Shown here: one piece after another, positions 8,199 through 51,900 of the stretch | Position numbering within the stretch: the first letter of the stretch is position 1 | Layout: each line of letters starts with the position of its first letter | Notes under the pieces: model-generated | The model's database searches: none | What the model was told of the DNA's origin: nothing | Seen by the model: only the letters and a program-made list of their open reading frames with translations | Program-made: the position numbers and the translations under genes | Source: Auanema rhodensis | Taxonomy: Eukaryota; Animalia; Nematoda | Length of the DNA stretch: 64,000 nt | NCBI GenBank assembly: GCA_964057225.1 | Contig: OZ059894.1 | Location: forward strand, 10,354,001-10,418,000 | Reading direction: 5' to 3'

Positions 8199-8608
8199 AG
8201 AGAGAATTCCAGAAGATAATGAGAATCTTGAATTTAAACTGATGACAAACGAACGGAATCGTACAATTCTAATTTAACGTGAAAAACGTGAAGTTCATTT
8301 CAAATAGTTGACATTAATAAACTGGTTGTATACATAAATATGTAATTTTCTATAGTTTATTGAGGGAAAAAAAGAAAATAACGAAAAAAAAATGAAGAAA
8401 TGCTTTACTTTGCATCAAAATGTTAAAGATGAAAGTTTGATAGAATTGAGAATTAGATGGACAGCTGGAATATGATGGGAAAAGCTTGAAATGAATGACA
8501 AAAGAAGTAAAATAGATATCAGAAAAGCAAGAATGTTTAAAAATAAATATTACTGTAGAAAACTTAATGATTATTCAAAGAAAATAGTTCGAAAACTGAA
8601 TTTTGTAG

Positions 8609-27939: not shown

Positions 27940-29209
27940 TCAGACTTTTTCTTTCGTTTTTTCCTTTGTTTGCTGTTTATGTGTTTTAACCAGTGTTTTA
28001 ACATCTCGACGATGAAGTATGGAATCTTTAGTTAAAGCTTCAATAGCAGCAGTAGCTACAGCTTCTTGACGTCGTTGTTGTAATGCTTCACGATATTGCA
28101 CTGAAAATATACTTTTAGACTGATCATTTTAAAATTATTCACGTATCATTCATCTAATTATATATTTATATTTGAAAAAAAAATTATAAATTATATATTT
28201 AACTAAATAGTTTAAATAAAATAAACGAACTTGAATGAATAATTAGGAGTCCACCCCAAGCAATTGACCAAAACCAGCCAACAAATAAGAATGTTATAGT
28301 AAAAAACTGACTAATACCAACTAATAGATTAACTAAAATATGCTAACTATAACAAGAAAAAACAAATGAAATATGCTTCTAATACCTATAAGAGTAACCA
28401 ATTTTCTACCTTCTTTCATGTTAACTCTAGGCTGTCCCATACATAATGCTGCCAATCCGGATAAGATTGTGCCTTAAAAGACAAAAAATTATAAATAAAT
28501 AAGCTAATTAGCATAAATTCAACCAATTTTTAGCGTTTTCAAAAATAAAATAATAGGACGTTAGCGTAGCTTTTTTGAATTTACGTGAATACACGTGAAT
28601 ACGTCAAATAACGGAGGATATTTGAAAAAAAAAGAAAAATAATAAAATTAATAAATAAGAAGAATATAAAATAATTTATATATATAGTTAAATATAAATA
28701 TAATATATATATAAACCTGTTCCTGGAATAATAATATTAAGTAAAAGACATAGAAGAGCCACCGGAACAGGAAGAAATGGAATTGCTTCATGCATCATTG
28801 TTATGTCATTTGTTGGCAAATTTACCTAAAAAAAAAGAAATAAAAGGACAAATAAATATATAAATTATAAATTATAAATTAAAAAATAAAATAATATAGT
28901 TAGTTCAACATACTTTATCTCCATTTTTAGCTTCTTTCTGTGTATGTGCTTCTTCTTGTGCTGCAAGTACAATACCAGTGATGTTGAATGCATTTCCTGT
29001 CTTAAACACACAAAAATACTCAAATAATCAATTGAAATACAGAAAATGTTCTAAAAACTTTTTAAAAATGAAAAAGAAGAAGACAAACTAACAGATTGAG
29101 CTTGTAGTATCCCTTCACTCTTTCCATATTCAATTATTCTAGGTAAAGCCTTCTGAACTGCTCTCCATCCTCGTACCTTTTCTGCTAAATCTTTCAATTG
29201 TTTCGACAT
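27940..29209 (-). CDS. Stum (stumble)/SPEC3-family membrane protein
   Basis: Six exons in frame: MSKQLKDLAEK...|...HEAIPFLPVPVALLCLLLNIIIPGT|GTILSGLAALCMG...|VNLLVGISQFFTITFLFVGWFWSIAWGGLLII|...QYREALQQRRQEAVA...KEKV*. The AIPxLPxxxAxxCxxLNxxxPGxGT and GWxWSIxWG motifs are characteristic of the family. Confidence 0.88.
28581..28614. repeat. CGTGA-core short array (stum intron)
   Basis: TTACGTGAAT ACACGTGAAT ACGTCAAATA ACG; CpGs at 28584, 28594, 28602 and 28612. Confidence 0.7.
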
Positions 29210-30574
29210 TTTCTGTAACTTTTTCTCGGAAAAATTAAATATTTTAAATAATAAAGTAAGTGAAGAGAATAAAATATCTGTTTTTTTCTTCTTTTTTCTT
29301 TTAATTATTCATTTTAAATATAAAAAAATATATTTAATATGTGTGTAAAAATAAAAATAATATGATTAATTAGTAATAAATATATATTATTTATAAAAAT
29401 ACACATATATCTATCTATATATGAACATATAGATTAATAAAATAATTTTTAAGCCAAAAAAAAAAATAAAAAATCTTATATAGCCAGTCAGTTATGGCTT
29501 ATATGTCCATCGATATTTAGTCTACTTCTACATACAACCGGAAATGGTTGCATTGGTCTTGGTCTGAATTCATTGTGCTTTCAACTACCTTTACAACTTT
29601 TTCTTTATAAATTCAATTTCTATATAAATTTTAGTCACCTTTATGAACTTTTAATATAAAATTTTATTTTTTTATTTTATTTTATTTAAATTTTCAATAA
29701 TTTGAATAATAAAACCTGTTAAGATATTGGCTACACCTTCAGCTACATTTTGAATCATAATTGGTTTGTAAATGAACGGATTTGATGTCAAATTCTTCAA
29801 ATTAAAATTCTAATTCTGATGATTAAGTTGAGTTTAAAGACGAATATTTCTGAAAAAAATTTAAAAAATTTTTTATAAAAGTTAAATCGTAAAGTAAGAA
29901 ACTAAAAGTATATGTCATATAGAAGTAAATGCTTAAATAACTAAATATAAAAGAAATTTCTTTATAAAACAAATAAAAAGAAAAATACTTTTAATGTACT
30001 TTAAAGTAAAAATTCTAAGAAAGAACCTTAGTATTAGCTGTGATTTGAAATAATGCTTGAAAAAGGCTTATACAACAGCTTTAGTAGGCAGAAACAAGGC
30101 ACTAATCATCCAGGCAATTCATACCTGCTATTATAGCTTTTACTTCAAAGGTAACAACTTTATACGAAAGGAAAAACCTCGTTTAAACGATCTTGTGGTC
30201 AAGAAGAAGAAAAAAGTAAAATTTCCATTGAAATTCATAGATATAACTGGTTTTTTTTCCTGAAAATTAAGAGAAGTAAGAACATCAATTATAGAAATTA
30301 TATTTTATTGTATTTCATTGTAAGAATTTAAAGTTTTTATTTAAATAATTTCTATATCATTACATATGATTTAAACTTGTAAAAACTTTGTTCAAATATT
30401 ATATTTTTATATTAAAATATTCCAAATCAAACTCAATTATGTAGATGTTTGTTTGCAGTTTTTTGTTATAAACAGAAAAAAAATGAAAAATATTTCAAGT
30501 TATAACAAGTTGAAATAACGATGAAGTATAGAATATAAACAAAAAATAAAAAATATCTATATATACATCCATAC

Positions 30575-30690
30575 CAGGGTTGTGTGGACCGGATCGATAG
30601 ATCCGCAAAATCCTCAATATTGCTGTATTTCGTTAGATCCGGATCCGTAAACGATACTGCGGATCCTGCCCCGACCGGACCACCGGATCA
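30575..30690. mobile_element. GC-rich relic with repeated GGATC/GATCC motifs, possibly one end of a non-autonomous DNA transposon
   Basis: Starts CAGGGTTG and contains ACCGGATC, GATCCG, GATCCGGATCCG, GCGGATCC and ACCGGATC within ~115 bp. Sharp composition contrast with the flanks. No partner TIR or TSD found. Confidence 0.35.
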
Positions 30691-31675
30691 TTTTAATTTC
30701 TCATTCCTCTTGTTAATTTTTAGGATTTTTGAAAAACAGAAAGAAAAGAGCACAATTCACTTGAGTAGGCATCTATGAAGCGTATATTCTGATTTCTAGT
30801 AAACTATGAAGGATTCGGAAAACAAGTAAGATAAGCACAACGCGGATACATAGATATGATATAACTTCTAATTAGTATTGTTGTTGTTGTTGTTGTTGTT
30901 GTTATATCTTCTTCTTCTTTTTTAAAAATTTTAAATGACAAATAAAGAAAAATGATTCCAAAATGAGTTTATACGATACGTTAATGACCTCAACTTCATA
31001 TTAAATTCATCCTCAATGCATATTTTGGATGTATAGTAGGCATCATCATAGACTTCAATTCATTTTTAAAAAGTTTAATAAAGAAAGTTTTAAAGTTTTG
31101 TTAAAGAATTATAAAACTTTAATTATAAAACTAAAAATTTTAAGTAAATGATAATACAAATTGATGAGATGACATCTCACTCAATTGATCCGATCATCAG
31201 CTTCTATACTAGGAAATTATTTTTAATTTCTTTATTTTGAATGCTTTGTTTATTCTTTAAATTAAAATAATCAAAATACTTCAAATTAACACTTTGTTTA
31301 TTGTTTTTTTTTATAAAAAAAAAAGATTTTAACGCTTATTGAACAAGCAGGCCAATAAAACAATTCAAAAAAAGCTTAGCAACCATGAGTGAGGAAAAAT
31401 CAGTAACAACAATAAGTGGGGCCCATACAAAGATAATTCAAATTAATTTCTTTAGAATTCGAAAGAAATGAAATTTTTTAAAGGCAAGATGATAGTGAGG
31501 GGGCTTTCTCTTCCAAAATTAGAAGATATGAGAGATGAAAAAAACAAACAAAAAACAGAACATATTGAGATTAAGGATTACAATTAAGGTTTTCTCATGA
31601 TTATACTTCTTAAAACTTAAATATACAGTATAATTAACGTTAATTATTCATAATAATGACCATATCATATTGTCA

Positions 31676-34600
31676 TTAACATCCTTTAACGGCTACGTTA
31701 TCTGGACATTCACATTTGGATCCGCTTTCTGAAGGCAAACATAGGTAATTGCATCCACCATTACTATCAGCACATGGAGATGGAGCTAAAATTAAAATAT
31801 ATTTATATATATCTTTCATCTATAATTGCTTTAATAAAACTTTAACAACTTAAAAACTTACGAGCAGCACAATTCTTAGGAATACTGATGATACCGTATA
31901 CCTTGCCGGATCCACCAAGAGAAATAGGGAAGCTGGTATAGCTATCTCCATAAATTCCTACAGAATGAATACGATTGCTGAAATAAAAGTTGTAAGTCTC
32001 AAAGGCGAATAAGCTGTATCTCATACTCTCTCCAATCAGTCCAATAGAATCGTTGTTCTTCATCATGTGTTAAACCAAATGGATATTCAAGTGGAGCATA
32101 AACAACACGTCGATGTTGTCCATCAAATCCAATGCATGACAATCTAAATAAGAATAAGTTGAAGAATAAGTTTATAAGAAATATTAATTATTATAAATAA
32201 ATTTATTAAATTCTTCTAATCATACCTATGACTTCCTGCATCAACCCAGCATAATTCACGACGATTAGGTAAAACAGTTAATCCATTTGGGAGATGAACA
32301 TCATCATTTAAGAATATCTAATAAGAATATGATTATTATTAATTATTCTATTTATTTATTTATTATACTAACTTTATTATTTTTACCATCCATATCAACA
32401 CGTCCAATTAAAGGATTTTCACGATGCCAATCAGTATAATACAAATGTCTAAAATATTATATTTTGTAATAATATAAGTTAATATAAGTGATTACCTGTT
32501 GTACAGATCTAATGCTACTGATCGTGGATTGACCAAGCCTTCCGTTACTAAGCTCTTCTTGTACTTTCCATCCAATGAAGCAACTCCAATTTCATCGTTC
32601 AGTGAATCCGCATAGTAGACGTTTCTGAGAAGCAAGCCATTAAAAATCAGAAAATGCAATCTCAACGTCATTACCTGCTGCTCCAATCGACGGCAATTCC
32701 TTCGGGACTGTTCAATTCAGATGATAGGAAGGCAGACTGATCTGATCCGTTTAAGGAAGCTGAACGAATCTGATGGCCAGATATATCACTCCAGACTAGG
32801 CGCTCCTCCTCACAATCAAAATCAAGTCCAACAGCAATATGATGAGGAATAACAATAATCTAAAACAAATATTAGATGTAGAGGCTGAAATGGAATAATT
32901 TACTTGTTTTCCAGGAACATCAGCCGTTGTTCCTCTTTGGAAGATAGCCATTCCTCTAGCAATAAAGAGAGAATCTCCACGATCTTCGGAATCAGCTATA
33001 AGATACAAAATGAATTATACGTATAGTTAAAGATTTTCTCATCACGTACCAGTACATGTTCTTCCATTTCCATGATATCCGTATAAGCAATTACATACGT
33101 AATGACCAGCTTCTCCGGGAACACATTCTGCATGTTCATCACAGATTTTTCGATCATCAAGGCATGAAGCTGAAAAACATGAAGCTTTACCATTGAACAG
33201 TGAGTCAAGTTGTTCTATGAGATTTGAACTTCTACATATAGCTCTGTTGATTTAAAGTTTAAAATACTTTAAGAAGTTTATAAGCATTCATGCGTAACGA
33301 ACACCCAACTCGAAAAACTTACTTCTCAAAGCACAAACGTGACCATTTCCTTCGTATCCAACATTACATTTACATTGATATGCTCCAGATACTGAATTCT
33401 GAGAACAATGACCATGAATAGAGCAGTTAGAGCATCGTGGAGTATCTTAATAGTTAATATATCATTTAGTTTATGACATCTATCTAGCTACAGTATACCT
33501 TGTACAGTACACTGATTGAATCCATCTCCAACAGATCCTGGCTTACAGATACAAACATAAGTATTTTGATCATGATTCAAGACACATTGAGCATTTGAAT
33601 GACACATTCGTGGATTTTCATTACATGTTGATGGACGAGCATATGGAAGACAGGATACTCCATCACCAGTGAATCCCGTGACACACTTGCAGACGTAAGC
33701 GCTTTCTGTTGTACCATAGACACATTCAGCATTTTGATGACAAGCTGATGGATCAGCAGGATTGCATTTGTCTGAAAAAAAAAGCAAAAAAATGAGAAAA
33801 AACGTTTGGAAATGCTTAAAGCATACCAGCAATCTGGCACTTGTTCACCCCATCACCACGATATCCTGGCAAGCATTCACAGATGTATTCATTTCCTGAT
33901 AGAGCAGCAACGCAATGGCCATTCTGATGGCATTCGGTTGATTCTCGGCAACGCATTGGACGAGCTAGAAAAGGAAACAATGACGTCATCATGCAATAGC
34001 TTTAACAAACCTGGAGTTCCACCTTCCCAGTTAGGAACATTGCTATGAATACGAACACATGATAAACCATCTCCAACATAACCTTCTTGACATTCACAAC
34101 GATATTTACTAAATATATATATTTAATTATATCATATAGTTAATATATGAACTTACTTATAATGTGAATCAAAAGTACATTGAGCATTCTGATGACAATT
34201 TCTTAAACGATCACATCCAGGTTGTTCAACTAAAATAAAAAATATTATTCTATTTTCATTTAAACTTCAAGTTTTAATTCACAAAATTTGGTGTAAACTT
34301 ACGTGGAGGCAATGCAGCTCCAAGCTCAGTTTTAGAGCAATACTTTCCGTCTCCAGAATATCCAGATTGACAAACACATTTGTAATTTCCACCCATTACA
34401 GTACGTTCAAAGATACAATCAGCAAATTGATGACAATCTCTTGTAACATCACAACCAACAGAAGCTTAAACAAACAAACAACATATAATTATCATTAATA
34501 TAGTTAGTATAACTAACGATTATTGTATGGAATATCAACTTCTCCTCCAGATGATGATCCAGATGACGTCAAATGGCATTCAATTCCATTACCAATATAT

Positions 34601-35885
34601 GGATCTGTACAAACACATTGATAATAGCCAAGTTGATGACTGTAAGCACATGATCCATGCTCAGAACATTCATCGTGTGATCTACATACAGTACCTGAAT
34701 ATCATTGTTTTAACATTTATAATGAACAAAGATAGAATTACCGATTGTTTCATCTTCAGTGTTATCACTTGAGCTACTATCATCCATCAATGATTCACAT
34801 GTTATTCCATTTCCAATATAACCAGCTTTACATACACATTCAGACTATAATAATAGTTAAATTATAATTAAATATTGGTAAAGCATACTCCTCCAGCTGT
34901 ATCTGGCATACATTCAGCATTCATGTCACACACATGTCGTCCACAAGGCTTTCCTGATTTTGCTGGTACATTAGCATTATGTTGTTGAGCAGTATTTTCT
35001 ATAATTATGTGTGTTTATAATCAGTATAGTTAACGATTATTACGTTCTGGTGGTCCACAGTGATTAACTCCATCTCCTACATACCATCCACGGCATTTAC
35101 AGATACCGGATGGATTTCCGGGTGTGAAAGAGCATTCTCCAAACTGATGGCATTGACGGTGATTTGTACAAGTTCCAGCTGGGCCCTATTATGATTTTTA
35201 TGCATTTGTTCTTCAAATTTGTAGAGAAAGAAATGTTTAAACTTACAGCTCCAGCATCAAATGGTTGAGCAGGATGGCTTTCAACATGATGTTGATGAGC
35301 TTGTTGAGCTGTATTTCTTTCTTCTCCAATTTCTAAATATCAATTCATATGAAGACAAATTCTAAAATAGATTTACTTGAACATGAATGTCCATCTCCTG
35401 TATAGCCATCATTACAGCTACAGCTATATCCACCATCACTGTTAGTACAAGAAGCAAAGTGTCCACAGATCTGTCCCTGACTACATTCATCAATATCTGA
35501 ATAAGTAAATGATTTTTTTCAAATTTTCTTGAAGTTATGAATCACCTTCACAATTCCATCCGATAGATGAAGCTGAATCAGCTTTAGCTTGAAAGCCTTC
35601 TTCACATACACACCGATATGATTGTTCCCATGGAATACAACGCATAAATGGAAGAGTACAGACATGAGCTCCATGAGCACAAACTCCCTATAAATTTTGT
35701 TTTCAAAAATTATTTTGAAAAAAAAATGAAATACCTCAGTAATTTGAAGAGGACGAGAAGCTGGACGAACTGTTTGACCATGTTGACGACGATCAAAGTG
35801 AGGTGAACTGGCTGGTGCTTCAGCAGTACGAGTATTAGTTCCGACATGATTACGAGAAGCATAACTGAAACTTTAATTATGAAAA

Positions 35886-35947
<62 letters not shown>

Positions 35948-38739
35948 GGAGAAGGGGTAACTTGAAAAAACCACTTACCGTACAATTCCTTCATTAGAAT
36001 CATATGTTACATGAACTCTTTTAACTGATAATTTCACAGTTGTTGGCTTATCAAACTGAAACAAAAAATGAATTTCAATTAAATTTTAAAATTTGATATA
36101 TTACCGATTTGAATGGACATTCTTTGAAATTAATTTGTTGATCAATCGTTACTCTCATAGTTTGTTCTTGACCATTTTCACGAAGAATAACATCCATAGA
36201 TGTATATGACCGAATAAATCCTTTAAATATATTATTATTATTAACTATATGTATAATATTATTTATATAAAATACCATTTCCTTCTTTTCTATATTCTTC
36301 TTCATAATCAGGGAATACAACTTCAGCATCTGGAGAAATATCAGGAAGAGTTCCAGAAACGAAAACCTTCAAAAAATAAATTTTAAAAAATAAAAAATAA
36401 AAAAATTAATACATTAGCTTTAAGATAATGATAGATATCTCTTCCAGAAAATTCTTGTTTGATTGTTACATAGTAACGATCACCAATATGAAGAGTAACA
36501 GATCGATTGAATAATCCACCAGTTAGCATGAATCCATTATAAGCATCAGTTGCTTGAACCTGAATATATTAAATTAATTAATTAAATTAAATTTAAATGA
36601 AATCAATCAATGCGACCGTTTGTTTGTTGTTTGTTTATTCAAATGCTCATTTGCCCAGTTCACGTGGAATTCACGTGGAACTCACGGTAATCATGTGAAT
36701 CTCATCACGTAAGAATACATTAGAATAGTGAGACTTACTTCAGCGAATAGCCATCCCATAACTGATCCAACAGGAAGAAGAAGAAGCATTGGACTGGCCA
36801 AATCAGATGGAATCTGAATTCAGAATATGAGTATCCAGATCTGATGCTGTTTTATGAAAACCTTTGAAACTGCAGTAAATGCATGACCATCAGTTGGAGT
36901 AATGAATGTATGAAGATCAGTCTTTTCAACTGCTTTACCATTGAGTACAGCTTCAAAGAATCCAGATATACGTTGAGGATCTCCTGAATATGACATTCAG
37001 TTAATATAATTTTATAATTTGTTTTTAAACCTTTCTTTAAACATTCTTTTCCATTTCCGTAATAGCCAGGTTGACATATACAGCAATAACCTGGATTTTG
37101 ATCCCTGAAAATCATATTTGTTTTAATTTTAAAATGAATATGAATTACCGGCATTCTCCATTTGTGTGACAGGCTGTTTCACCAGCAAGATCGCAAGAGC
37201 TAGCAACTTCTTCAGAATCATAGCTACCAAGAGGAACTGAAAGTTTGTTAATTAAGAATATGATGTTTGAATACAATAAGCTTACTTCGTTGAGATGAAC
37301 GATCAGGCTCAGCTGGTTGAGCATCTTCAACTTGACGTGATTCATCAGCTTCTCCATCTTCCTCAGATTCAGCATCTAAATTATAAATAATATTGTTAAC
37401 TATTCATTTAGATATATAAAACCTGCACAGATGCATCTAGTACATCCACGATCATCAACAAGGTTATTACAACGTTCAGGACAGCTATCAGAATAAGCAT
37501 CAACTGGGCAATCTTTTGCTGAAAATATAAGAAAACAGTTAATGGAATATTTGAAATAGGCTTTACGTTGTTGACGACGTTGTTCTCCATCATAGTCTTG
37601 ATCATAATTTCCATAATCATATTCTTCTCCATTCTCTTTAGGGTCTTCAAATGCTGGTCCAGAAATACGGAAAATGAAGTAATTTCCATCATTTTGATTT
37701 GAAAGACTAAACTTATATATCTAATTACGCTGTTAACTATGCTATTAACCTGGCAATTTGTTTAACATCTGGTCCACCACTGTTCACAAGTGCATGGTAC
37801 ATGTCAGGCCCTGTGAAACCAGCTTGAGCATAGATTCCAGCTGATGATGACCATGGTAAATCTCTGTATAATAGGATACAGTATGAGAATATTCCATCAG
37901 AAGCAATTGCTAACTAAACAAATTATATGAAATAATAAAATAATTGAATTCTCTATGAATTTTTACTTGAAAAACAGCTTGTCCATCGTTTTCTTTGTTA
38001 TTAACTTCATCCCAAGTTACAATAATAGCTTGGAGAGTTTGAAACTCTGAACCATCAGCAAATTGATTTCGAACATAATCTGATAATTTTCTTAAAACAG
38101 CTTGATCAGATGTAGTTGATCTAAAAATATAAATTAATTATATAAATTAAATATTTATAGATGACCTATAGTATACGGTAGAATCTTCTACTGGTGCATA
38201 GTAAACAGCAATTGCACTACGATTCAATCGTTGAAGAGGAGTAATACTATCTAATATTATATTTATTAATTATATATTTATATTTTTATATTTTTTAAAA
38301 ATTATTTAAACATACCAGGTACTTTTTGATCAAAAGATACAATTCCAGTCGAACTAATGAATAGCTCATCATGTTCATTTTCAAGAAAAACTACAGGAAT
38401 TTCCAATGCTACAGCATGCTGTTCAGTAGAATACGGTATAATCTAAAGAAATACAAATTCATTTTCTTCTTAAACATTCAGCATATCAAAGATATTTTTT
38501 TTTTAATTTCAATAAGAGATTTCTTATCATTTTACTAAAAATTTTATTTTCTTATCTGATAGATTAGAATAAGCAAAAAAAATTACAATTCATAGTAATT
38601 TTGTATTAATTAATTAAAATAAATAAATAAAAATATATAAACATACTTGATCTCCAACAGTTTGTCCAAAATCAAATAGTTCTGCTTGAGCAGATATTAA
38701 AGGAATAATTAGTGACAGTAACAATAGTTTGAGCCTCAT
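31676..38739 (-). CDS. nid-1: Nidogen/entactin (basement membrane glycoprotein)
   Basis: Signal peptide MRLKLLLLSLIIPLISA; NIDO domain (IIVTWDEV, FQLAIASDG, AQAGF); EGF; G2F beta-barrel (PVGSVMGWLFA, NGFMLTGGLFNRSV); many EGF repeats (CHQNAECV...CKCVTGFTGDGVSC); YWTD propeller (SPEGIAVDWSS, LVNPRSVALD, LYYTDWHRENP, LCWVDAG); final EGF ending CECPDNVAVKGC*. Dozens of short introns. Confidence 0.97.
36659..36712. repeat. TCACG-core array (nid-1 intron)
   Basis: TTCACGTGGAA TTCACGTGGAA CTCACGGTAA TCATGTGAA ... TCACGT; CpGs at 36663, 36674, 36685 and 36708. Confidence 0.8.
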
Positions 38740-40571
38740 GGCTCCTAAAAAAATGAAAATTTTAATAAAAATGAATTTAAAAAGAAAGAAAAAAGAATAA
38801 TATTACTTATATAGTTAAATATATATTATAGAATATATATATAATAGTATATTGGTTGGTATATACTATGTATTTGATGATTGATAAGAGCTGCCAAAAG
38901 AAAAAAAAAAGAAAAAATGGCTTGACCCCTTGTCTTATAACTTCATTTGATACCATAAAGAGAGAGGATGAGGGAGAGAAAGTAAAGTATAAAGAGAAAG
39001 AGAATGAGAGAATAAAAGGAAATATTATTATATTGATAAGACATTTGAATGATAACATCGTATTATGATTGGGTTGTTTCACATAAATTTTGTTTGCAAT
39101 ATCTTCTAAAAGTTTATGAAAAACTATGAACTAACTCTTCTCAACTAACTATTTAACATATAGTTTACATTTCATATCTTATACATATATATATATATAC
39201 GTATAGTTAGTTATAAATAAGAAAAAAAGAATGATTTTCATATAAAAAAAGGCTGAATAAGATGAAAAAATGGCTGAGGATGATACGAAGTGAGTATATG
39301 CTATGAATGAAGGGGGAGGAGTGAAGTTGTAGTAGAGAGAGGGCAATAAGATGACGCTGAATGAATCAGTATAGTAAAGGTGAGATGATACATATATGTA
39401 TTTATGAATATAAAAATATATATTAAACAATACTATATATATATAGTTAGCTGTTTATAGTTATTATTTATAAGATTAGAGGTAGAAGAGGTCAATGTGT
39501 TGTTGAAGAAAATGCTGACTCATTTACGGATGGATGAGCAAAAATTCTATTAAGAAAGGATAATATGAATACTAATATAAGTAATAATTGGACATATTCA
39601 GTATTTAGATAGAATAGTTAGAGTAGAACTATACCATATAAGGTTAACGACCTCAGGTCGAATTTTCAAATGGAAAACTGCTCATATGAATGGATGACAA
39701 TGAAACAATGGAAGAGGTGTCAGCAAAGGATCAAATGCAGAAATACAAGGAGGATTTAGGTAAAAGATGACATAAGATTTTCATAAAATTTAACCATATC
39801 ATATAGTTAATAGTAAAAATGGAAAGACAACAACAGCTTACAACAGTTCGAGCAGAGAACATAAGCGGTAACTGAGGTGTTTTTTTTTCCGAAAAGCAAG
39901 ATAACTTCTGCTGTCGGTAATCTGAGAATACCGTCTGGTCGGCAGAAAGGAAGAGAGGTCCTTAATAGCCTTCTGGAGTATAAGGAAAAGGCAAAAAGAG
40001 GAGGATATTATGAATTAGATGATAAACAGACGTCAAATAGAGATTATAAAAAGTAGGATAACAGGTGCTTGTATATAATGATATAAGAAAAAAATAGAAA
40101 ATACCATATAACAATAGAAATAGAAAGAAATATATTAAGATGTATGAAAAGAAAATAAGAAGAAGGTAAGAAGGGTGAGAGAGTTAGAGGTTAAGAAGAA
40201 GGAGAGAGGAAGAGTAAGAGGTTAAGAAGAAGAAGGAGGAAGAGGAGAGAGGGAGGGAGGGAGGTGAAGAAAAAAAGGGATTAAATATAAAATACATAGA
40301 AAGAAGAATAGAAAGGTCATTATACTTAACTGTATATATGTATTAATATGAGCCACTTGATAGAATTAAATAAAAAAATTAATAAAACAATAAATGGATT
40401 TAGATTGAATATTAAGAAGTTTAATCATTTTTTTAGAACAAAATCAATATTGTAATGAGGATCAAGAGGTCAAAATAAAGAAAATTATGAACAAATTTTT
40501 GATTATACACACGTGAAATACACGTGAAGATAGATTAAGTAGAATTCTAGACAAAAAGAGACAGAGTGTGT

Positions 40572-40629
<58 letters not shown>

Positions 40630-41347
40630 TGAAGAATAAGGCAGAAAACTGAAAAGATTTGTTGAATTGTAAGCTCGTTATGTTACATCGTTAAGGCTCC
40701 ATCTATATTTGTATGCATTTAGGAAAGAATGTGGTAAAGTTAAAGGAAATGAGAAAAAAAACTTTGGAAGATATTAAGTATTTCCAGCTGCAATACAAGA
40801 CAAATGGAAGTTGTGTGAAAGATCTTTTGAACGATGAATTTTCAAATAATGAGACAAGAGACTGTGAAAAGCACCTTTGACCAAGAAATTTGTCATTTTA
40901 TTTCAGAATAAAAATGAGAACATGTGTCTATTGAACTGTTAAAAAGTCATAAAAATCTTTTTTTTTTCTGTTCATTTTCACATTTTAAAATAGAAAATAT
41001 ATTATACTATATTATACATATAATAAATATAATTTATAGTTATACATATAAATAATATTTTATTTAAAAAAAAAAAAGGTTTGTAATTTGATTTCAAGTT
41101 TGAAACAAATGAGGTTTTTTCCAGCCATGCTAGATCTCTTTATAATTAATCATTTCGTTCTATCTGTTGTAACAGTTTTTTTCAATGACTCAATCACTTT
41201 AAATCTTTTTTTTTGCTCAAAAATTTTATTTTATGTTTGGAAATAAACATTCAACTTCAACTTGAAATTCGGATATATTTGGATTTTTACAGATATTCTC
41301 AGACATCTTCAAATTTCGGTTTAAGCTTTGTTTCATCAATATTGATT

Positions 41348-41410
41348 ACACGTGAACTAAACGTGAGCTGTGCGTGAGCTATACGTGAAATGTGCGTGAA
41401 AATCACGCTT
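41348..41410. repeat. CGTGA-core array with exact 11-bp period
   Basis: CpGs at 41351, 41362, 41373, 41384, 41395 and 41406; the spacers differ between units. Confidence 0.9.
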
Positions 41411-44400
41411 ATCAGCGTCTTCATTCATTATTTCATTTTCAAATAGTAGACGTTCAATTGGTTTTATATAGTATATACAATATTTTATATACTATATATA
41501 CATATAGTTAAGATTTAACCAGTTATGTATATACTAACTATATGGTTTGATTATTATATTTGAAGTTCTAATTCAAGAATATGAAGTATATAACTTGAAT
41601 GTAAAATTAGAAAATTGAACTTTCAATTAAAATTATTTTACAAGAAGAAGATTTGAGATTTTTTAATTAAATTAGTAGTCAAGTGATTACATCAACGAAT
41701 GATGATTCATCAGTTAATTTCATTCTTTTTTTTTCAAATTTTCATTTATTTTTCAACTTTAATATTATATATATATATTTTATTAATATTTTATTAAAAA
41801 ATTTAATAAATTTGAAGAATATTTTGTGATCTATGAGTTTTTAAATTTTTTTTGTTTACCGAAGAGACGACATGTAACCTATACATCTTGACGAGTAAAC
41901 TCTTCAGAAATCCACACACACTTTCAAGAAGCCGGTTCGGATAAGTTTCATCCTCTACTTCAGTCTTATGCAAATTTGAGATGTAATCTTTATCTTTCTT
42001 TAAATTTAAGAAAATAATAACTTAAATTTTAATAATAAAAAACTTCTTAATTATATACATATAGTTAGTTATATTTAAATATATTTTAAAATTTTTAATT
42101 AATTTCATAATCAACTGTATTTCTTGAAATTGAAGTAAAAATTCAAAAACTTTTATTCTTTTTGATAAAAAAAAAAGAATATTTTGATTAAAGAATTCAA
42201 ATATAAATTCTTTAAAAAAGATTGAAGAAGAAGAAAATTGAGAAAAGAAAATGATATAACATGTCATAAAGAGAAGAAATACATATAAATCTTTTTGACC
42301 TCTTAGTCCAGCTATATATACATATATTTCCATTTTAATCAAAATATTATGTTTATTTATTATTTAATCTATTAAGATAAATCTGAATTTATATAAATCT
42401 TTTTTAAAAAATATGTTTTTTTTTTTCTTCAAATATTTCTGTGTGAAATGAAAAGTAAATTTTGAGAAAGAAATGGGAATAGAATGTGCCAAATGCTCTA
42501 CTATGTCAACATTCTTCAATGATTTTTCTTCTATTGTTACTGAAATAATTTATTACAAATGAAACAAAAAAAAATGGAAAAAATCGTTTATCGCAGTAAG
42601 CTGTGTTCTTCTCAACTCTGACGATGATGAGTGTGGCCAGTGGTCACTACTACTCCTACTTCTACTAAGCATGTCAATGATTTCATTGTCTCTTGTTCAA
42701 TTTCATAGTTCTTTCAGTAACTTTCTCAATATTTTTCTTTTTTGTTTTCATATAAATGCCATGAATCCACCAGTAAAGCTCTTAAGTAGTTTTGGAATGA
42801 AGAAAAAAAAAAAGATTTTCGTTTTAGAAATAATTCAAATTTGGCGCCCAACGGATGTCGTGCAAGGTCGCCATCACATCGTCATCGTTGTCATATTCTC
42901 TACGATGAGGACAGTTGCAACAAATATTCTGATTGACAGAAATTTTAAAATACCTTAATATCTTAACTATGTGTATAAATTAATTTATTATTCTAATTTA
43001 ATAAATTTATTCGTTAATATCTCATTATGGATCATCATAAGCTATCAAGGAAAGTCTTATGCCTTCATCGTCGTCATTCTTCTTATTCTTCTGCTTCTTC
43101 TTCTTCGTGAACTTTTCCATTTTTATCATTCTTTATTCTTGCAAGCATTCTTCTCACACATACATTCACACACACAGTTTTTCTTGAAAAGGTCGATTTT
43201 CAAATTTGATAACATGACATCGTTCACCAGCTGTTTATACTTTCTTCTTCTTTTTCTTTTTGCACTACTTAGTAAATGAATGTTTGCTTTTTTCTTGTTT
43301 TCCCCTCTCTCTCTCTCTCCCTCTCTTATCTCTCTCTATATTCTTGTTTCTCTCACTCCCTCTGATTGTCTTCAATCGTTTTTCTTTCATCATCTTTCTT
43401 CATCCTCATCTTCCACACCCAGTCCTCCTCCTCACTTTTCGCTTCTATTCCCTTTTCTCTTGTTCATCCCCTCTCTATCTCTCTACTGTCTCTCGCTATT
43501 TCTATCTCTGTGTATATTACCTTTGTTGCCTTTCTTTCTCTCTCTCTCTCTTCATATCTTTCACTGTCTAGCCCTATGTTCCATTATGTTTTATATTTTA
43601 CCAATTTATATGTCCATAATAAATTATTTTATTTTCTTGCTTATTTTCCCCTAAAACTTCCTGGAATTTCGCCCGAATATCACGAGTATTTGTGAGTCGG
43701 CTTCTCATTTTCACGGAAAAAAAAAACGTCGTCGTCGTCATCGTTGTCGTCGTGATAGCTTAATCGTTGTCTAAATCGCCTCCGGGCTATTATCTCCAAT
43801 ATGTTAGCCGATTACTCATTATTTCTTAACAAATTATTATTTTTATGACTCATTAAAATACATTTTATCTTCTCATTATCTCTTCATTTTTCAATTAAAG
43901 CTCTCGCTCTGCTTCTTCTTTAATAATAATTTCGCTTCAGATTTTGATTGTTTTCACTCACATTTTCGTGTTATTTCTCGTATGAAACTTTAATTTTTAT
44001 AAACTTTGGCTTTTATATTCATAGAAGGTTCATATCCACTTAAGCTTCATTTCATTTTATTCTTTGAATTTCCGATCTACCTCTATTCTCACATCAATCT
44101 AAACCCAATTCTTAATACAAATCAATGTCTTAAAATCAAAAATTAGTTGTTTTCTCTCTCTCTCTCTCTTTCTCTCTTTAACTTATAATTCAATTGTATT
44201 TTATCTAAATATAAAGTTCATTAACGGCTTTTTCTAATTGTTAATTCAACAACACAAAACATCTGTTTAGCAACTTTAAGATAAAGAAAATGATATTACT
44301 TTCATCATGTTCTAACTTGATTGATTTCAAATCATTAAATCGCATTGTATCTGCTTGTCAATCTTATCTTTTCATTCTTACTAACTATTCCTTCTTCTTA

Positions 44401-45065
44401 ATTAGTTTTTTAAATAAAATTTATTTGTTAAATATATGATTTTATAAAGAAAACTTATTCTTTCAACTTTACTGAACATTGATCGTTCAAACTTTTACAA
44501 AAAAATTTATTTTCATTTTTATTTTTTTTGCACCTTTACCTGATGTTTTAATTCTTTTTGTTAAAATAATATTTCTATTATTTCACACATATATTTATAA
44601 TATTTAATATATTTATAATAATAATAATAATCTTTATTATTATTATTATTATTTTAAATTATAAAAAAAAAAGAAATAATTATTATATTTTAATTTGGAA
44701 TGTAATGTCTGTTGATCAATCTATATAATCTGATTAAATGATATCACATGACAAATCTCTATTACTTAATTAGCATATCATGTATTATAAATAATTAGAA
44801 TAATTAAAATTTTAATTTATTGTTCAATTTAAATTGAATTTCTTCTAACTTCTTACTTTCTTTATATATTTTTTTAATTTTTAATATAATATATACATAA
44901 GTGTATATTCTAAACTATACATATAGTTAAATATATTAACAGTTAAGCTTTTATGTGTATGTTCTTCTTATTTATCTGATTATATGATATAGTTAGTGAT
45001 CATAATAGTTATGATTTTTAGTCATTTAGTTAAGAGAGAATGTATACAATCTTCACACCTCTCTC

Positions 45066-45096
<31 letters not shown>

Positions 45097-45447
45097 CTTT
45101 CTCTCTCTCTCTATTCCTATTAACCCAGAATACATACATACATACACGTATATTGAAGAGTTTGCAAATAGAACAAAGACATATCATAACTATGTGTATA
45201 TAGTTTATAATTTATTTTAAAATAATAAAAATATTTTTAAATATTCTTGAAGAAGACTTTTTTCTTTTTTTCTTTTTTCTTTAAGCATTATGAACACATG
45301 TGTTGCTATGCAATTATCTTTAGTTCTTTTCCATTAGCACAAAGTTCTTGAAAAGACCTTTTCATTTTTTTCGAAAAAAAATTGAAACTTAAGGTCTGGG
45401 TATTGTCTTTTCAAAACTTCTTATAACTCTCTCCCTCTCTCTCTCCT

Positions 45448-45479
<32 letters not shown>

Positions 45480-47978
45480 TATCTCTCTCTCTCTCTATCT
45501 CTCTCTTTCTTTCTTTATATATATCTTTCTCTATGTATGTTTTACTATTTTTATTATAATCTTATTGATTTCAAAGTTTTTATTTCAATATTATTATTAT
45601 TCTCATCAATCATTTTCATTTCTTATAATATAACAACATATAACTTATATTATTTAGAAAATTATATATAAACCTTCTTCTTCTTCTTCAACTTTTCAAA
45701 AAAAAAAGTAGAAAACAGGAAGATGAAGATGACAATTTAAATATTTAGATATTATTCTATCTATCTTATGTACATAAACTTTTCTGATTCGTCGTGTTTT
45801 TGCCGAAGAAAAACGAGAACTGCGTTCCACTACTCTCGAAACGTTTTTGAAGTTCAGCATTAACGTCACGGAAAATACTGAATCTTATCTCACAACTGCT
45901 TCATTCTGTCTGCCAATTTTTGTGAAATATGAAAAAAATTAAAAGAAAGAGCAAAGAAATAAGTAAATACTCGATTGAGAATATCATTCTCCACACTCTC
46001 TTGCCCTTTTTCTCCCCTATCTCTCTCTCTTTTTCTCTCTCTTTCTATCTATCTATCTCTCTCTCTCTCTCTTTCTTCATATATATTTCTCTCTCAACTT
46101 CTTGTTCTCTTCTAGACAATTTGTTCACTTTTTTTGATGCCTTGTCCTCCTCCATACATTCTATTTGCTTACACGGTTGATTCAAGTTGTTGAAGTTTTG
46201 ATATCGGATTCATCTTCATTTCAATTTTTTCAACCTTTATGTTTTCTCCCTCTCTCTCTATCATACTCTCTTCTGATTTTTCAAGCTGTGTCATATAAGT
46301 CATCGTTGGCCTCTCCTTCTTGATATACTTTGCCTTTGTCAAGTTTTTGTAACCTTGTCTCACTCAACTTTTTCCGAAAGAGAGAAAGAGACTGACCTCC
46401 TAGGTTGAGTCGCATGAAGTCATTTCACCCACTTTCATATTTTTTTCTTTGTTTCTCTCATTCCCTCCATAATACCTGTGCTCTCTTTCCTCACTTTTTT
46501 CATTTTTTACTTCTTATCTTTCAGTTATTCTAGATTTATTTCTCTTCAATATCAAGTAACAACATAAACAACAAAAATTGAAAATCAAAAGTAATCGAAG
46601 CCCCGGATATCAGACTTCACCCACCATCGTTTTCATTCATTTTTCCTAAGCTTTCCAACAACTTTCAACAACATATTTTTCAAATGAACTTAGAAGAAAA
46701 TAGCTAATAGCATACATATAATTCAATAAACTTTTCATTTTTATTCTTCTTAAACTTGAAAAAAAAAACATTTTTTGTAATTAAATAATATAAATTCATT
46801 TAAAAATAATAACAAATCATATTTTCTATTCTTAAATCATTTTTTCTTTTCTTTAAATGAATAATGAGAAAGTAATTCTTGAAGTTTTCAAGAGACATCG
46901 TTTTCCAAAAATTCATTGTCATACTCTTATCTATCAAGTAAATCAAATGTGGTGTTTGTTTGATCTCATTCTCTTTGAACAAATCTTTTTGAAACTCTTT
47001 ATTCAAAAATATGTTTTTCTTTTCTTTTTTTTCGTCACAAAATGATATATTGATGTATGTATATATAAGTAAATGACCTCTAAAATGGTTAAAAATTCTT
47101 TTTTCTCTCATGTAATCTAACATGTCACTCATTTCTTAATCTCTTTTTTGTCTTTTAGCATGTCTATATTTCTATTTTTTTGTACTTTTTATCATTTTTT
47201 TTAAATATTTAAATATATTTATTTTAATAAATATCAATAATATCATTCAAATACTATCAATAAATTCTCTTTTATTTTATAGTCAAGGTCACGGTAACGC
47301 CTACTTCTATTTACGGTTATATCATATTAATCAAAAGCTTTTAATTTAAAAAAAAAAGAATAATTAAAGGTTTATTATAGTTTTTTTTTTGTTAAATTAG
47401 ATGAGATAGAAATCTTTATTACAATATAAATTACTTTAAATACTTTGGTTTTAATAACATATTCTATCATTTCCAGATGTTCTAATATTTTAAAAGTACA
47501 AAAAGATTATTTATAATATTACCCGAAATCTTATGTTTTATATTTTCGTAAAATCCAACATGAAAGTTTGGTTATTAAACTTACAACTTTAACAGCATTT
47601 TTCTATCTTTTGATCATTTTAAGCGGTCTTCCTTTTAAGAGTTGTGACATGATTCCATAACTGACATCTAAACATCTCCTTGATGTCTTTCTTTTCATTC
47701 TTTTCTTAATCAAAGAAAAAGAATAAGAGAGAAGAAGAAGAAGAAGAAGAAGAAATATATATTAAAATAGAAAAGAATATATTCTTTATACCATATAGTT
47801 AGTTAAGAAATCACCAGAAAATACATTCTTTTGTACTGAGAAATACGAATATTTCCTTTTTTTTCCTCTCAATATACAAAGATCTTAACATGTCTCTGAG
47901 TATATCAGTCTGTTTCTCTCACACATGCACTAAACTCCTTTTCCTGCTCGCTTATACTCTTTCTCTTTCTCTTTCTCT

Positions 47979-48034
<56 letters not shown>

Positions 48035-48765
48035 CACCTTGTCTTACCCCCTCTTCACAGGTATATGTTATGAGAAAATATATATTTTCCTTCTTTTTTT
48101 TTCCTTAAATCATCTATATATATATACATATTGAAATATTTTCTATCTTTCTGATACATAATAGATTTTCTAAACTTTTATCAATGAAATCTCATTTCTA
48201 ATATCATTTTTCTTCCTTCTTTCATATTTTTTGAATGTTTAAAATCAATAAGATTTAACTATTATTTCTTTTCTGTTATAAATAACCTTTATATTAATCT
48301 TAATAAAGAAATAATATAATAATATGTATATATTATTCTTATCTATACTAATTATAAATATATTTATTTATTTTACTTTTTAATCCAATTTCATATTTTC
48401 CTATCAATTTCCTTATTCAATACAAATCAATATAAGTTGATGATTACGCTTGTAAAGCAAGATAAAGCAGAAGCATGAAAAGCTTCATGCACTTATAATA
48501 CTATCTACGTATGTATATTATATGTTTTCTTTCTATTTCTTCTATATTTTATTTTAAAATGAATGATGTAAATAGACAATAATTATTATTTAACTAATGA
48601 ATCTATTCATTTTAACTTATATAGTATAAGTTAATGTTTTTCTTAACAACTTCACTGTCAGTTTAATTAAAAAAGTGAAAGTTTCTGTCTCCAAATTCTT
48701 GTTGCTTACAACCGTACATCCAACGTTCATAACAATTCAAATGAACTTTCCATTTTTATTCAGAA

Positions 48766-48900
48766 CACACGTGCAACTCACGTAATTCACGTAAATCACT
48801 ATAATGCTATAAATCATTCTACTATTCACGTAACTCACGAGCTATTCACGTGACTCACGAGCTTCTCACGTAACTCACGCTAGCTCACGTGGGCGTAATT
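48766..48900. repeat. TCACG-core array with alternating 11/9-bp spacing (20-bp dimer GCTATTCACGTAACTCACGA-like)
   Basis: CpGs at 48770, 48781, 48790, 48829, 48838, 48849, 48858, 48869, 48878 and 48888. Confidence 0.9.
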
Positions 48901-51900
48901 CACTTAGCTTTAGCTATTTCTTCTACTTTACACTCATCCTATACTATTTTTTTGGTTTAAAAATATGAAAACGTTGCCTTTCTTTACTTCTTTTGTTGTT
49001 TTTTTCCCAAATAACGTATAGTATATGATATTCACGTACATAAATTTGAATTTTTGCTTTTTATCTTGTTTTAAAATATGAGAAAAACATCAAAGCATAT
49101 CTAGCTATCGTTGAAAATCAGTAGATTTGAAAGAAAATGTCATCTATATAAGGCTATGTGAAAGCTACTGACGAGAAGAATCTGACAGCCTCTTGGGATC
49201 AAAGTCATCATGGTGGAAAGAAAGAAGGAAAAAAACATTTTTCATCTAAATTCTCTGTTAAGATGTTACCTATCATACATTTTCTATATATTTTATTAAA
49301 TTATTATATTAACTATACATAATCATATTATTATGATTTTATTATAATCAAGTTAGTTTTTGGTACTTCTTTATAATTGTTCTAATTTCAAAACAAAATT
49401 AGCAGAGAGAGAGAGAGAGAGAAACTGATTGTTAAAAGGGAGGAGTGAATTAACTGTTTTCTTTTGTATTTTCGAGAGAAAAAAAACATTATTTCGATAA
49501 TAAAAAAATGTAGTTCCTTTTTAATTATGTGCATAATTTAATGAATTTACAGACTTTAGCCACGCAAACTCCGAGAAAAAAACCAAAATTCTTAAATTTT
49601 TTTTTGTGAAAGATGGTGAAGATTCATTGTTGATCACATCTCAAATAGAAACCTTATAGTTGCTGAGATACTTTTTTTTTGAAACTATCCCTTGGGATAT
49701 TAGTTAAGATTATAAAGTATCTTAGTTTTCTTTCCATTTTTTTCTCTTTTTTTTTTACAACAACTTCTAAGTTCAATAGAATGAGAAGAATTGAGAAAAA
49801 TGATCAAGCATTTAACACAATAGAAGAACTAAAAGCAAAAGTATAGTATATACCGACAAACCTTTTTATTCGTAAAAAAAAACAGAGAAAGAGAGAGAGA
49901 GAGAGAGATAGATAGAGAGATAGTCATATAAATTATATTTTTTTTATAAATATTAATATATATAATATATTTTTTTAAAGGAAAAATAAGTATATTTGTA
50001 TTTAGTTATTTAGAAGTTTTTTCCCATTCAAAAATGAGACAGCTCTCATTTCAATGAGCTGACACGTGCGAAAATGTATTTCCTTTTCTGGTATTACGTT
50101 TTCATTTCCTTTTTTAACTTTTGAGTTAAAATTTTCAGAGAAGAATAATCTTTTATTTCTTTTTTTTTTGATTTTATAAATATATTTGTTTTGAAACAAG
50201 CTATGTTCTGCAACATCCTAAACAAGTAAAATGATTTTCAAGCTTCACTGAATATTTGTTTCATGTAACATCTGAAGATCTTCGAAACAACGTTTACTTA
50301 CAATTTTATTTTATTTTTCATTGTTTTTTCTGTTCTTTTTGAGTTTATTTATTTGAAAAAATTGTTTTAAACTATGCCTAATATGGCAATCAAATAGTTT
50401 GATTGAAAAACTAGGGAAAAAAAAGATATTTGGTTTCTAATTTCTAACGAAAAATTCTCATTTTACTTTCGAAATTTTCCAAAATCTGTTTCTAACTAAC
50501 TCTTCAACTCCATTCTTCAAGTTTTTTCTGTTCAAATAAATGCTTTTTGGCTCTTTTTTCACAGCTTCCTACCCTTTTCCATCCATACTGCCTAACATTT
50601 CTCTCAACTCTGTGTTACTATCTTTCTGTTGTTAGTCTCTGGCCACCCTCTCAATCTTCTTGTCTCCTCACCCTTACTATCTCCCTTCCAATTTCTATTT
50701 CTCTCTTTTCCTTTTTCTAATCTATTCTGGCCTATGATGTATCTTTAACATGAAGCAGAAGCAGAAGCAGAAACAGAAGCAGAAGGCTTCTTCAATCCAA
50801 TCTCACAAAATCACCAAGATTCATGTCGAAATTTCATTTTCTGGCCACAACCAACATGAACATGATCATCATGATCACAATGATCATAAGCTACTCAAAT
50901 TGAAAAAAAGAAAAAGAAAAACAAGAGAAGATTGAATTTTCTTCATATTTTCTTATATTTTCATGCTTTTTCTATTATCTTTTTACTTTATTTTAGTTTT
51001 TCTTTTATACATATATGCATCCTACTATCAACATATTCCATTTTTCTGTTTTTCTTCCAACATTTCTCCATTTGTTGCAACTTCATATCTTCGTCTTCTT
51101 TCACATACTTTCAACTTTTTTTTTGTTTGAAAAGCAAAAGCTATCGTTTCATGATTCAAGCCATCATCGCTGACAAAGCTTTCAAAGTCTTGTCTGATCT
51201 GACGTTTATTCTCTTTTAACTCAAACTTCTATTAGTTCGTTCAATGTTCAATAGAACAAAGTTTTTCGACGACAAACGAGCAGAAACAACGTTGTGTCCG
51301 CCTAATTGACCATATTTGACTTATTGAAGCAGGGTGAGGAGGAAAAGAACGCCTTCACGACAAAAACAACAAGCTGATTTGAGAGTTACGACGAGATATA
51401 GAGCACATCATGAAAACGTTTGAGCAGGAAAAAGCAGATATATCAGCTTCTCAGTCCAGTCATTCAGCAGTCCTACCATGTACAACCATTGTTTTAACTA
51501 AATATTATTTTTTTAAATTTAAGACCAAATTTGTAAGAAAAAAGAAAAATTTCATATTTTACTCAATTATTTTCAAAAAAAATAAAAGGAATTTTTAAAC
51601 TTTTATAATATTCTATTTAATCTTTTATGCAATTTTAGATCAAACTTCTTTTTAATTTCCTTTAGTTTCTTATTATATTTTATCTATTCATCATTTTTAT
51701 TTTTAAAATAATTTCTTTTCATCTATCATATCATCTCATATTCCTCTCCCCCCCCCCCCTCAACCAAAACTTTTCATGTATTGATGTATAAACTAAGTGA
51801 ATATATCATAAAAGAATGGAAAAGCATCACCCAAATCTTTGGAGGCTTTGGAAAAAACAAAATTTTCCTCCCTTCCCTTCCAATCTCCGCCACTATCCGA

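Follow-up and report, generated by a model that had tools for sequence, protein, structure and literature searches.

Several core promoter motifs of Drosophila are directional and precisely positioned, among them the initiator (Inr) words TCAGTY (INR) and TCATTCG (INR1) and the downstream promoter element (DPE) KCGGTTSK (DPE2) (PMC1779564, Table 1). Nematode precursors of Piwi-interacting RNAs (piRNAs) are about 28 nt long and depend on promoter-proximal pausing (PMC6436959), and the GTTTCA (Ruby) motif is ancient in nematodes. Both systems bear on a 64,000-nucleotide stretch of the nematode Auanema rhodensis (the window; C1:10354001-10418000 of a 181-Mb assembly), in which the pentamer CGTGA/TCACG recurs in five tight clusters and in separate short groups. 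With a probability of roughly 60%, the clusters consist of an ACGT-core site of 7-8 bp, TTCACGTR, in homotypic arrays that have grown by tandem duplication and form the upstream part of a cassette resembling an Inr+DPE promoter. An earlier note on this DNA had described the clusters and missed the cassette, an oriented composite of which the arrays appear to be the variable-copy part. Its order is an octamer-like box, ACGT boxes, (C/T)ATTT, 22 bp and CGGTTG.

The window is eukaryotic DNA with short exons and 30% G+C. Its CpG observed/expected ratio of 0.72 makes the background sparse in CpG, as the earlier note had it, only to a moderate degree. When the intervals were read and all CGTGA/TCACG occurrences were listed, every core of the five clusters and of the pair at 8278/8287 was found where the note had placed it. 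The six CpGs reported 11 bp apart in cluster 4 proved to be those of five direct CGTGA cores and one inverted TCACG. The features are as follows, in window coordinates:

8278-8291, plus strand: pair of CGTGA cores 9 bp apart (at 8278 and 8287), AACGTGAA twice
8296-8328, plus strand: rightward rigid cassette at this pair, with CATTT at 8296-8300, 22 bp and TGGTTG at 8323-8328
22387-22463, plus strand: complete four-part module, with octamer-like ATATGCTAAT at 22387-22396, CGTGA at 22407, TCACG at 22418, TATTT at 22431-22435, 22 bp and CGGTTG at 22458-22463
28507-28516: octamer-like ATTAGCATA of the cluster 1 cassette
28520-28552, minus strand: leftward cassette of cluster 1, with TATTT, 22 bp and TGGTTG (plus-strand CAACCA at 28520-28525)
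28584-28606, plus strand: cluster 1, two ACGTGAATAC units (CGTGA at 28584 and 28594) and one TACGTCA
36613-36645, minus strand: cassette of cluster 2, in the same sense as the nidogen gene, with CATTT (plus-strand AAATG at 36641-36645), 22 bp and CGGTCG at 36613-36618
36660-36709, plus strand: cluster 2, TCACG at 36660, 36671, 36682 and 36705, with a decayed TCATGTG in between
40512-40527, plus strand: cluster 3, two CACGTGAA units 11 bp apart (CACGTG-N5-CACGTG; CGTGA at 40512 and 40523), no canonical cassette
41351-41407, plus strand: cluster 4, five CGTGA exactly 11 bp apart (41351-41395) with diverged spacers, and an inverted TCACG at 41403
48709-48743, minus strand: leftward cassette of cluster 5, with CATTT (plus-strand AAATG at 48739-48743), 24 bp (the modal length plus 2) and CGGTTG at 48709-48714
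48778-48889, plus strand: cluster 5, TCACG at 48778 and 48787, then seven at 48826-48885 spaced 9, 11, 9, 11, 9 and 10 bp

Tandem Repeats Finder calls a 10-bp unit at cluster 1. Cluster 2, whose first two cores read CACGTG-N5-CACGTG, is intronic in the nidogen gene, with an exon end some 15 bp away. The second part of cluster 5 consists of a two-core unit of about 20 bp present three times, which gives the 9/11 alternation. A cassette accompanies five of the seven core clusters of the window, clusters 3 and 4 being without one; near cluster 4 just CATTT-N20-TGGTTT was found.

Clustering on this scale exceeds chance both locally and genome-wide. The window holds 16 same-strand neighbour pairs at 7-17 bp, where 300 second-order Markov simulations gave 0.30 on average and never more than 2, and among its rare pentamers TCACG alone clusters in this way. 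In the genome, three direct cores with gaps of 1-12 gave 403 matches, against 11 for the reversed word. A composition-matched CpG control word, CTCGA, gave 6 triple arrays and its reverse 96, so that the genome scan for at least three cores, which the earlier note had proposed, did bring out an excess (403 versus 6-96).

Sixty arrays fetched from the genome, together with those of the window, make up a sample of 64 arrays and 231 units anchored on TCACG. Bases outside the search word are conserved across these units (preceding T 67%, following T 84%, then R 73%), and the consensus of the site is TTCACGTR, or YACGTGAA on the other strand, longer than the pentamer first noticed. Conservation beyond the search word between independent arrays is what would be expected of a protein-binding site, and the site belongs by its letters to a class that may suit bHLH-PAS, bHLH-ZIP or bZIP-type factors. 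A search of the literature on these words and on Auanema promoter motifs found no description of the element.

The invariant asymmetric ACGTG(AA) of the arrays carries the core common to bHLH-PAS response elements. The asymmetric RCGTG core of that family is present as ACGTG in 195 of the 231 units (84%) and as GCGTG in 20 (9%), and several copies are closely packed, as in the homotypic clusters of bHLH-PAS and bHLH-ZIP factors. Units of the CANNTG type are a minority: CACGTG accounts for 69 (30%), CACGTA for 76, and CACGTC and CACGTT for 25 each, while the palindrome TCACGTGA occurs in 35 (15%). These proportions, and an array spacing that is not fixed at 11 bp, set the arrays apart from the hypoxia response element and CNS midline element (HRE/CME, RCGTG) and from the coordinated lysosomal expression and regulation (CLEAR, TCACGTGA) systems. 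The carbohydrate response element (ChoRE) of Mondo/Mlx, two E-boxes 5 bp apart, is matched literally by clusters 2 and 3; across arrays, the period runs from 8 to 14 bp and E-boxes are the minority of units. The GAA by which the site is extended on its 3' side is not known from the HRE/CME, CLEAR or ChoRE consensus sites. A canonical E-box cluster is ruled out by the count of CACGTG units. Among the analogies offered in the earlier note, the homotypic E-box/HRE cluster is therefore the closest, although "E-box", and the statement that the core is often inside CACGTG, apply to 30% of the units and make a loose label for the rest.

The arrays are tightly coupled to a promoter-like module. Within 300 bp of the 64 arrays, strict CAACCG/CGGTTG boxes point outward in 35 cases and inward in 1; with the relaxed form [CT]GGT[TC]G within 130 bp the figures are 47 and 3, and 44 of the 64 arrays have such an outward box, against about 7 expected from the box frequency in the window. 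When the 47 outward boxes are aligned, columns -25 to -23 hold T in 41, 36 and 35 sequences, which gives (C/T)ATTT, and the box itself follows a purine-A. [CT]ATTT stands at the fixed distance in 30 of the 47. The combination CATTT-N20-24-CGGTTG has 1,836 matches in the genome, compared with 100 for the reversed control, and relaxed copies are probably many more than these strict ones (about 1,800).

The coupling is also seen from the side of the cassette, in 40 loci (L061-L100) picked on the cassette alone, independently of arrays. Their gap is 22 bp in 26, 21 in 6 and 23 in 8; lengths of 20 and 24 were permitted by the search pattern but did not occur. ACGTGA or TCACGT occurs within 150 bp upstream of 24 of the 40 (at least two boxes in 14), and ACGT averages 1.43 per locus upstream versus 0.23 downstream. 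In the alignment of the array-linked boxes, the orientation of the cores relative to the cassette is random (25 versus 22), as expected for an orientation-independent activator site. At many cassettes an octamer-like box, ATGCTAAT or ATTAGCAT, of the POU type by its letters, lies 20-100 bp upstream of the ACGT boxes (window positions 22387-22396 and 28507-28516; loci L066, L072, L075-L077, L085, L089, L090, L094-L096 and L100).

The likeness to the Drosophila Inr+DPE promoter extends to the letters, (T)CATTT and CGGTTG, to a strict strand specificity and to the register. [CT]ATTT occupies the place of the Inr word (TCAKTY/TCATTCG), and the box on the same strand, CGGTTG, TGGTTG or CGGTCG, that of the DPE word (RGWYV/KCGGTTSK). 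The strict spacing from A+1 to G+28 is kept to within 1 bp in the 40 sampled copies; in the window, cluster 5, at 24, is an exception. Against this likeness, the cassette has T where fly TCAGTY has G, the host is a nematode, the copies are not aligned with nearby spliced genes, and initiation is here what we infer from motifs. Counted from the A of CATTT as +1, GGTTG falls at +28 to +32, in the position and with the letters of the Drosophila DPE of the KCGGTTSK type.

The cassette, which is dispersed, oriented, non-coding and about 100 bp long, comprises an optional octamer-like ATGCTAAT, 1-12 ACGT boxes of either orientation, (C/T)ATTT as the initiator-like word, 22 (+/-1) unconstrained bases and CGGTTG, with the arrays as its variable-copy upstream part. 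The ACGT arrays arise and are resized through local tandem duplication of a site-bearing unit. The motifs with their order, orientation and spacing, their excess in the genome, the tandem-duplication origin and the fact that no transposable element is involved are shown by these data, whereas binding of proteins, initiation of transcription and the nature of the product are inferred. The most likely mechanism is that factors bound at the ACGT boxes recruit or stabilise TFIID on a core promoter of the Inr+DPE type; box copy number would tune promoter output.

The spacing within arrays does not follow the rule of about one helical turn, with 9 and 11 bp favoured, that the earlier note had put forward. 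In the 64 arrays the periods are 9 bp (34 intervals), 11 (30), 12 (24), 10 (16), 14 (14), 13 (10) and 8 (8). Strict helical phasing is ruled out by this distribution of 8-14 bp with peaks at 9, 11 and 12, in which 9 and 11 are not special; the spacing looks like close packing of sites and not like a fixed helical pitch. Adjacent units of the same period in one array have spacers 73% identical, compared with 41% between arrays, and the arrays therefore grow by local tandem duplication. Adjacent units are identical in 13 of 40 pairs, and 14 of 33 arrays are near-perfect repeats (at least 80% identical), whereas 11 have diverged to less than 60% identity. The spacers, which the earlier note had called free, are so between arrays and not within them. 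Some arrays retain core and period while their spacers drift, cluster 4 being the clearest case.

Several observations weigh against a simple form of the promoter reading, which is still the best fit. Between 40 and 2450 bp downstream of the 40 cassette loci, counts of the 3' splice word TTTCAG are equal on the two strands (67 sense, 67 antisense), and 5' splice words number 36 in sense and 33 in antisense; the test does work on a control, with 9 TTTCAG versus 0 inside the nidogen gene. Since cassette direction fails to predict downstream spliced transcription, a promoter of spliced genes is rejected. The mean fold z-score downstream of cassettes is -0.37, against -0.33 in controls, and an Rfam search of the window matched no family; a structured RNA product is rejected on these grounds. 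No ACGTGA/TCACGT box lies within 150 bp of 16 of the 40 cassettes, and clusters 3 and 4, the latter the best-phased array, lack the canonical cassette, and the gap of cluster 5 is 24 bp. Some of the copy number may be neutral, since a good many arrays are young and perfect repeats. In C. elegans, start sites were reported not to be enriched in DPE (PMC3730108).

An unlikely but serious alternative is that the arrays are mostly neutral minisatellites, in which replication slippage starts from one or two functional ACGT boxes of a cassette and multiplies them into copies without a function of their own. Head-to-tail units from recent duplication, repeated every 7-22 bp and in many arrays nearly perfectly, are indeed what minisatellites have. 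The higher spacer identity within arrays, the share of arrays that are at least 80% identical, a period constant inside each array and ranging from 6 to 18 bp between arrays, decayed cores such as TCATGTG inside arrays, and the 0-2 boxes of most sampled cassettes all fit it. The difference from minisatellites is that a single 7-mer core recurs here in hundreds of independent arrays with unrelated spacers and an oriented flanking module. Cores and period are kept in 11 of 33 arrays despite spacers less than 60% identical, the five cores of cluster 4 keep to exactly 11 bp although the spacers between them are unlike, and composition-matched words give 4 to 70 times fewer arrays, which means that the word itself matters and not slippage alone. 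The earlier note had set a protein-binding array against a slipped satellite; the conserved positions outside the search word support its first term, but the choice was a false one, as the signature of tandem duplication is clear. A transposon origin, as bodies of miniature inverted-repeat transposable elements (MITEs) or as subterminal repeats bound by a transposase, is scarcely credible. It would account for a short word repeated in both orientations and dispersed genome-wide. All-against-all BLAST of the 700-bp flanks of the 64 arrays (128 flanks) found no shared sequence adjoining the arrays, an inverted-repeat scan around the window clusters gave AT-rich chance pairs and no terminal inverted repeats, and a genome search with window 36000-49100, a 13-kb region, brought back nothing but a dispersed GA-rich repeat, unrelated and about 100 bp long. 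The arrays are thus not a MITE or transposon family, neither of the signs by which the earlier note would have recognised one (shared flanks and terminal inverted repeats) having been found, and its suggestion of transposase-binding repeats falls with them.

It is something of a long shot that the cassettes are thousands of autonomous RNA polymerase II (Pol II) mini-promoters for short capped RNAs, either small RNAs specified by DPE and pausing in place of the Ruby motif or another unstable non-coding class, with the ACGT arrays setting the output of each locus. As a rival to the array-driven promoter, in the form of mini-genes for piRNA-like or other unstable RNAs in which Pol II starts at CATTT and pauses or terminates near CGGTTG at about +28, the idea is very unlikely. 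The dispersal of thousands of oriented copies over introns and intergenic DNA, whatever the direction of the host gene, would suit it, as would the 22 unconstrained nucleotides between the boxes, the C-A-T-T of CATTT, which fits the YRNT start context (T at +3 in 41 of 47), and the length of paused piRNA precursors (about 28 nt; PMC6436959). Ruby-motif piRNA genes are likewise tiny oriented dispersed units in the thousands, with a YRNT-like start and some 20 unconstrained nucleotides downstream, but the cassettes are without GTTTCA about 40 bp upstream, have a defined downstream box and carry their upstream boxes at variable distance. Canonical Ruby-motif piRNA genes are rejected because no conserved GTTTCA column lies upstream of the cassettes; a crude Ruby-type genome pattern was uninformative, its matches coming mostly from one tandem array. 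The fold z-scores and the Rfam result given above also speak against mini-genes, and ACGT-box and octamer activator sites are not known as piRNA features. A chromosome-level role, as arrays for pairing-centre, dosage-compensation or architectural proteins, is highly improbable. The arrays are missing from outer C1 (0-6.4 and 17.9-24.7 Mb), their counts are uneven between contigs, and three triple arrays fall in 12 kb of the window. However, they lie in the gene-bearing central domains of six large contigs (C1, C3, C4, C5, C6 and C7), at neither one end nor one chromosome, so the pairing-centre and dosage-compensation analogies of the earlier note do not stand, and their tight coupling to a promoter-like module is a further argument against such a role. 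The local density is not exceptional either: at about one array per 400 kb, roughly one such dense window is expected among some 2,000 (an estimate).

Were the cassettes real start sites, this nematode lineage would have a compact promoter grammar, possibly a new RNA class, and natural variants of box number and spacing with which homotypic clusters on a core promoter could be tested. Some 1,800 strict Inr-N22-CGGTTG cassettes, dispersed over introns and intergenic DNA without orientation relative to genes, are to be set beside the report on C. elegans DPEs cited above. Should they serve as mini-promoters for short RNAs, the lineage would use fly-type Inr-DPE grammar to make an as yet undescribed class of product. 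Even without start-site function, the cassettes would be a very abundant oriented protein-docking module.

The nidogen (NID-1) gene that contains cluster 2 lies on the minus strand at 31600-37950 (about 37.9 to 31.6 kb), with NIDO, G2F, EGF and YWTD exons. Each exon was searched by reference on its own, and the closest protein matches are nematode nidogens. About 175 N-terminal residues are unplaced upstream of 37913, and clusters 3 and 4 may therefore lie in nidogen 5' introns or in the promoter region. In the search for relatives with nidogen exon proteins a strongylid fragment was the only return, and an exact-product look-up gave no record. Searches of all representatives and with the full-length nidogen returned Steinernema, filarial and Caenorhabditis sequences and one Logan transcript, 63% identical in the searched exon, and no close relative's locus. 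The genome search with window 36000-49100 showed no allelic or paralogous second copy of the region.

Distinct strict arrays number 14 on C1, 14 on C3, 2 on C4, 3 on C5, 9 on C6 and 14 on C7, with none on C2; on C1 (24.7 Mb) they are confined to 6.4-17.9 Mb. C2 has neither TCACG triple arrays nor a copy of the GA-rich repeat and may be a different kind of contig from the other large ones. The GA/CT-rich dispersed repeat of about 100 bp occurs in the window at 40549-40640, 45426-45542 and 47953-48035, and in more than 100 copies of 77-97% identity on C1 and C3-C7. One of its copies begins 20 bp to the right of cluster 3, which it excludes.

On the cassette sense strand of loci L061-L100, runs of T exceed runs of A from 0 to 900 bp downstream of CGGTTG (T5 435 versus A5 247). 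The excess is mild, weaker upstream (613 versus 467) and not significant by a sign test across loci. Cassette matches in the leftmost 5.5 Mb of C1 are identical copies inside repeated units, and unique cassettes begin at about 5.58 Mb. Matches in repeated units lie at C1:3377189-3473690, 4220023-4228532, 4884268-4890949 and 5918537-5924084, which suggests a repeat-rich outer domain on the left of C1. About 1.93 Mb beyond the window, C1:12346635-12433481 is occupied by a long tandem array with steps of about 230, 460 and 690 bp. Within its unit, CTGTTTCA, which resembles a Ruby/SNAPc word, precedes CACATT by about 38 nt, and the array may be one of small nuclear RNA (snRNA) or spliced-leader RNA (SL-RNA) type genes.

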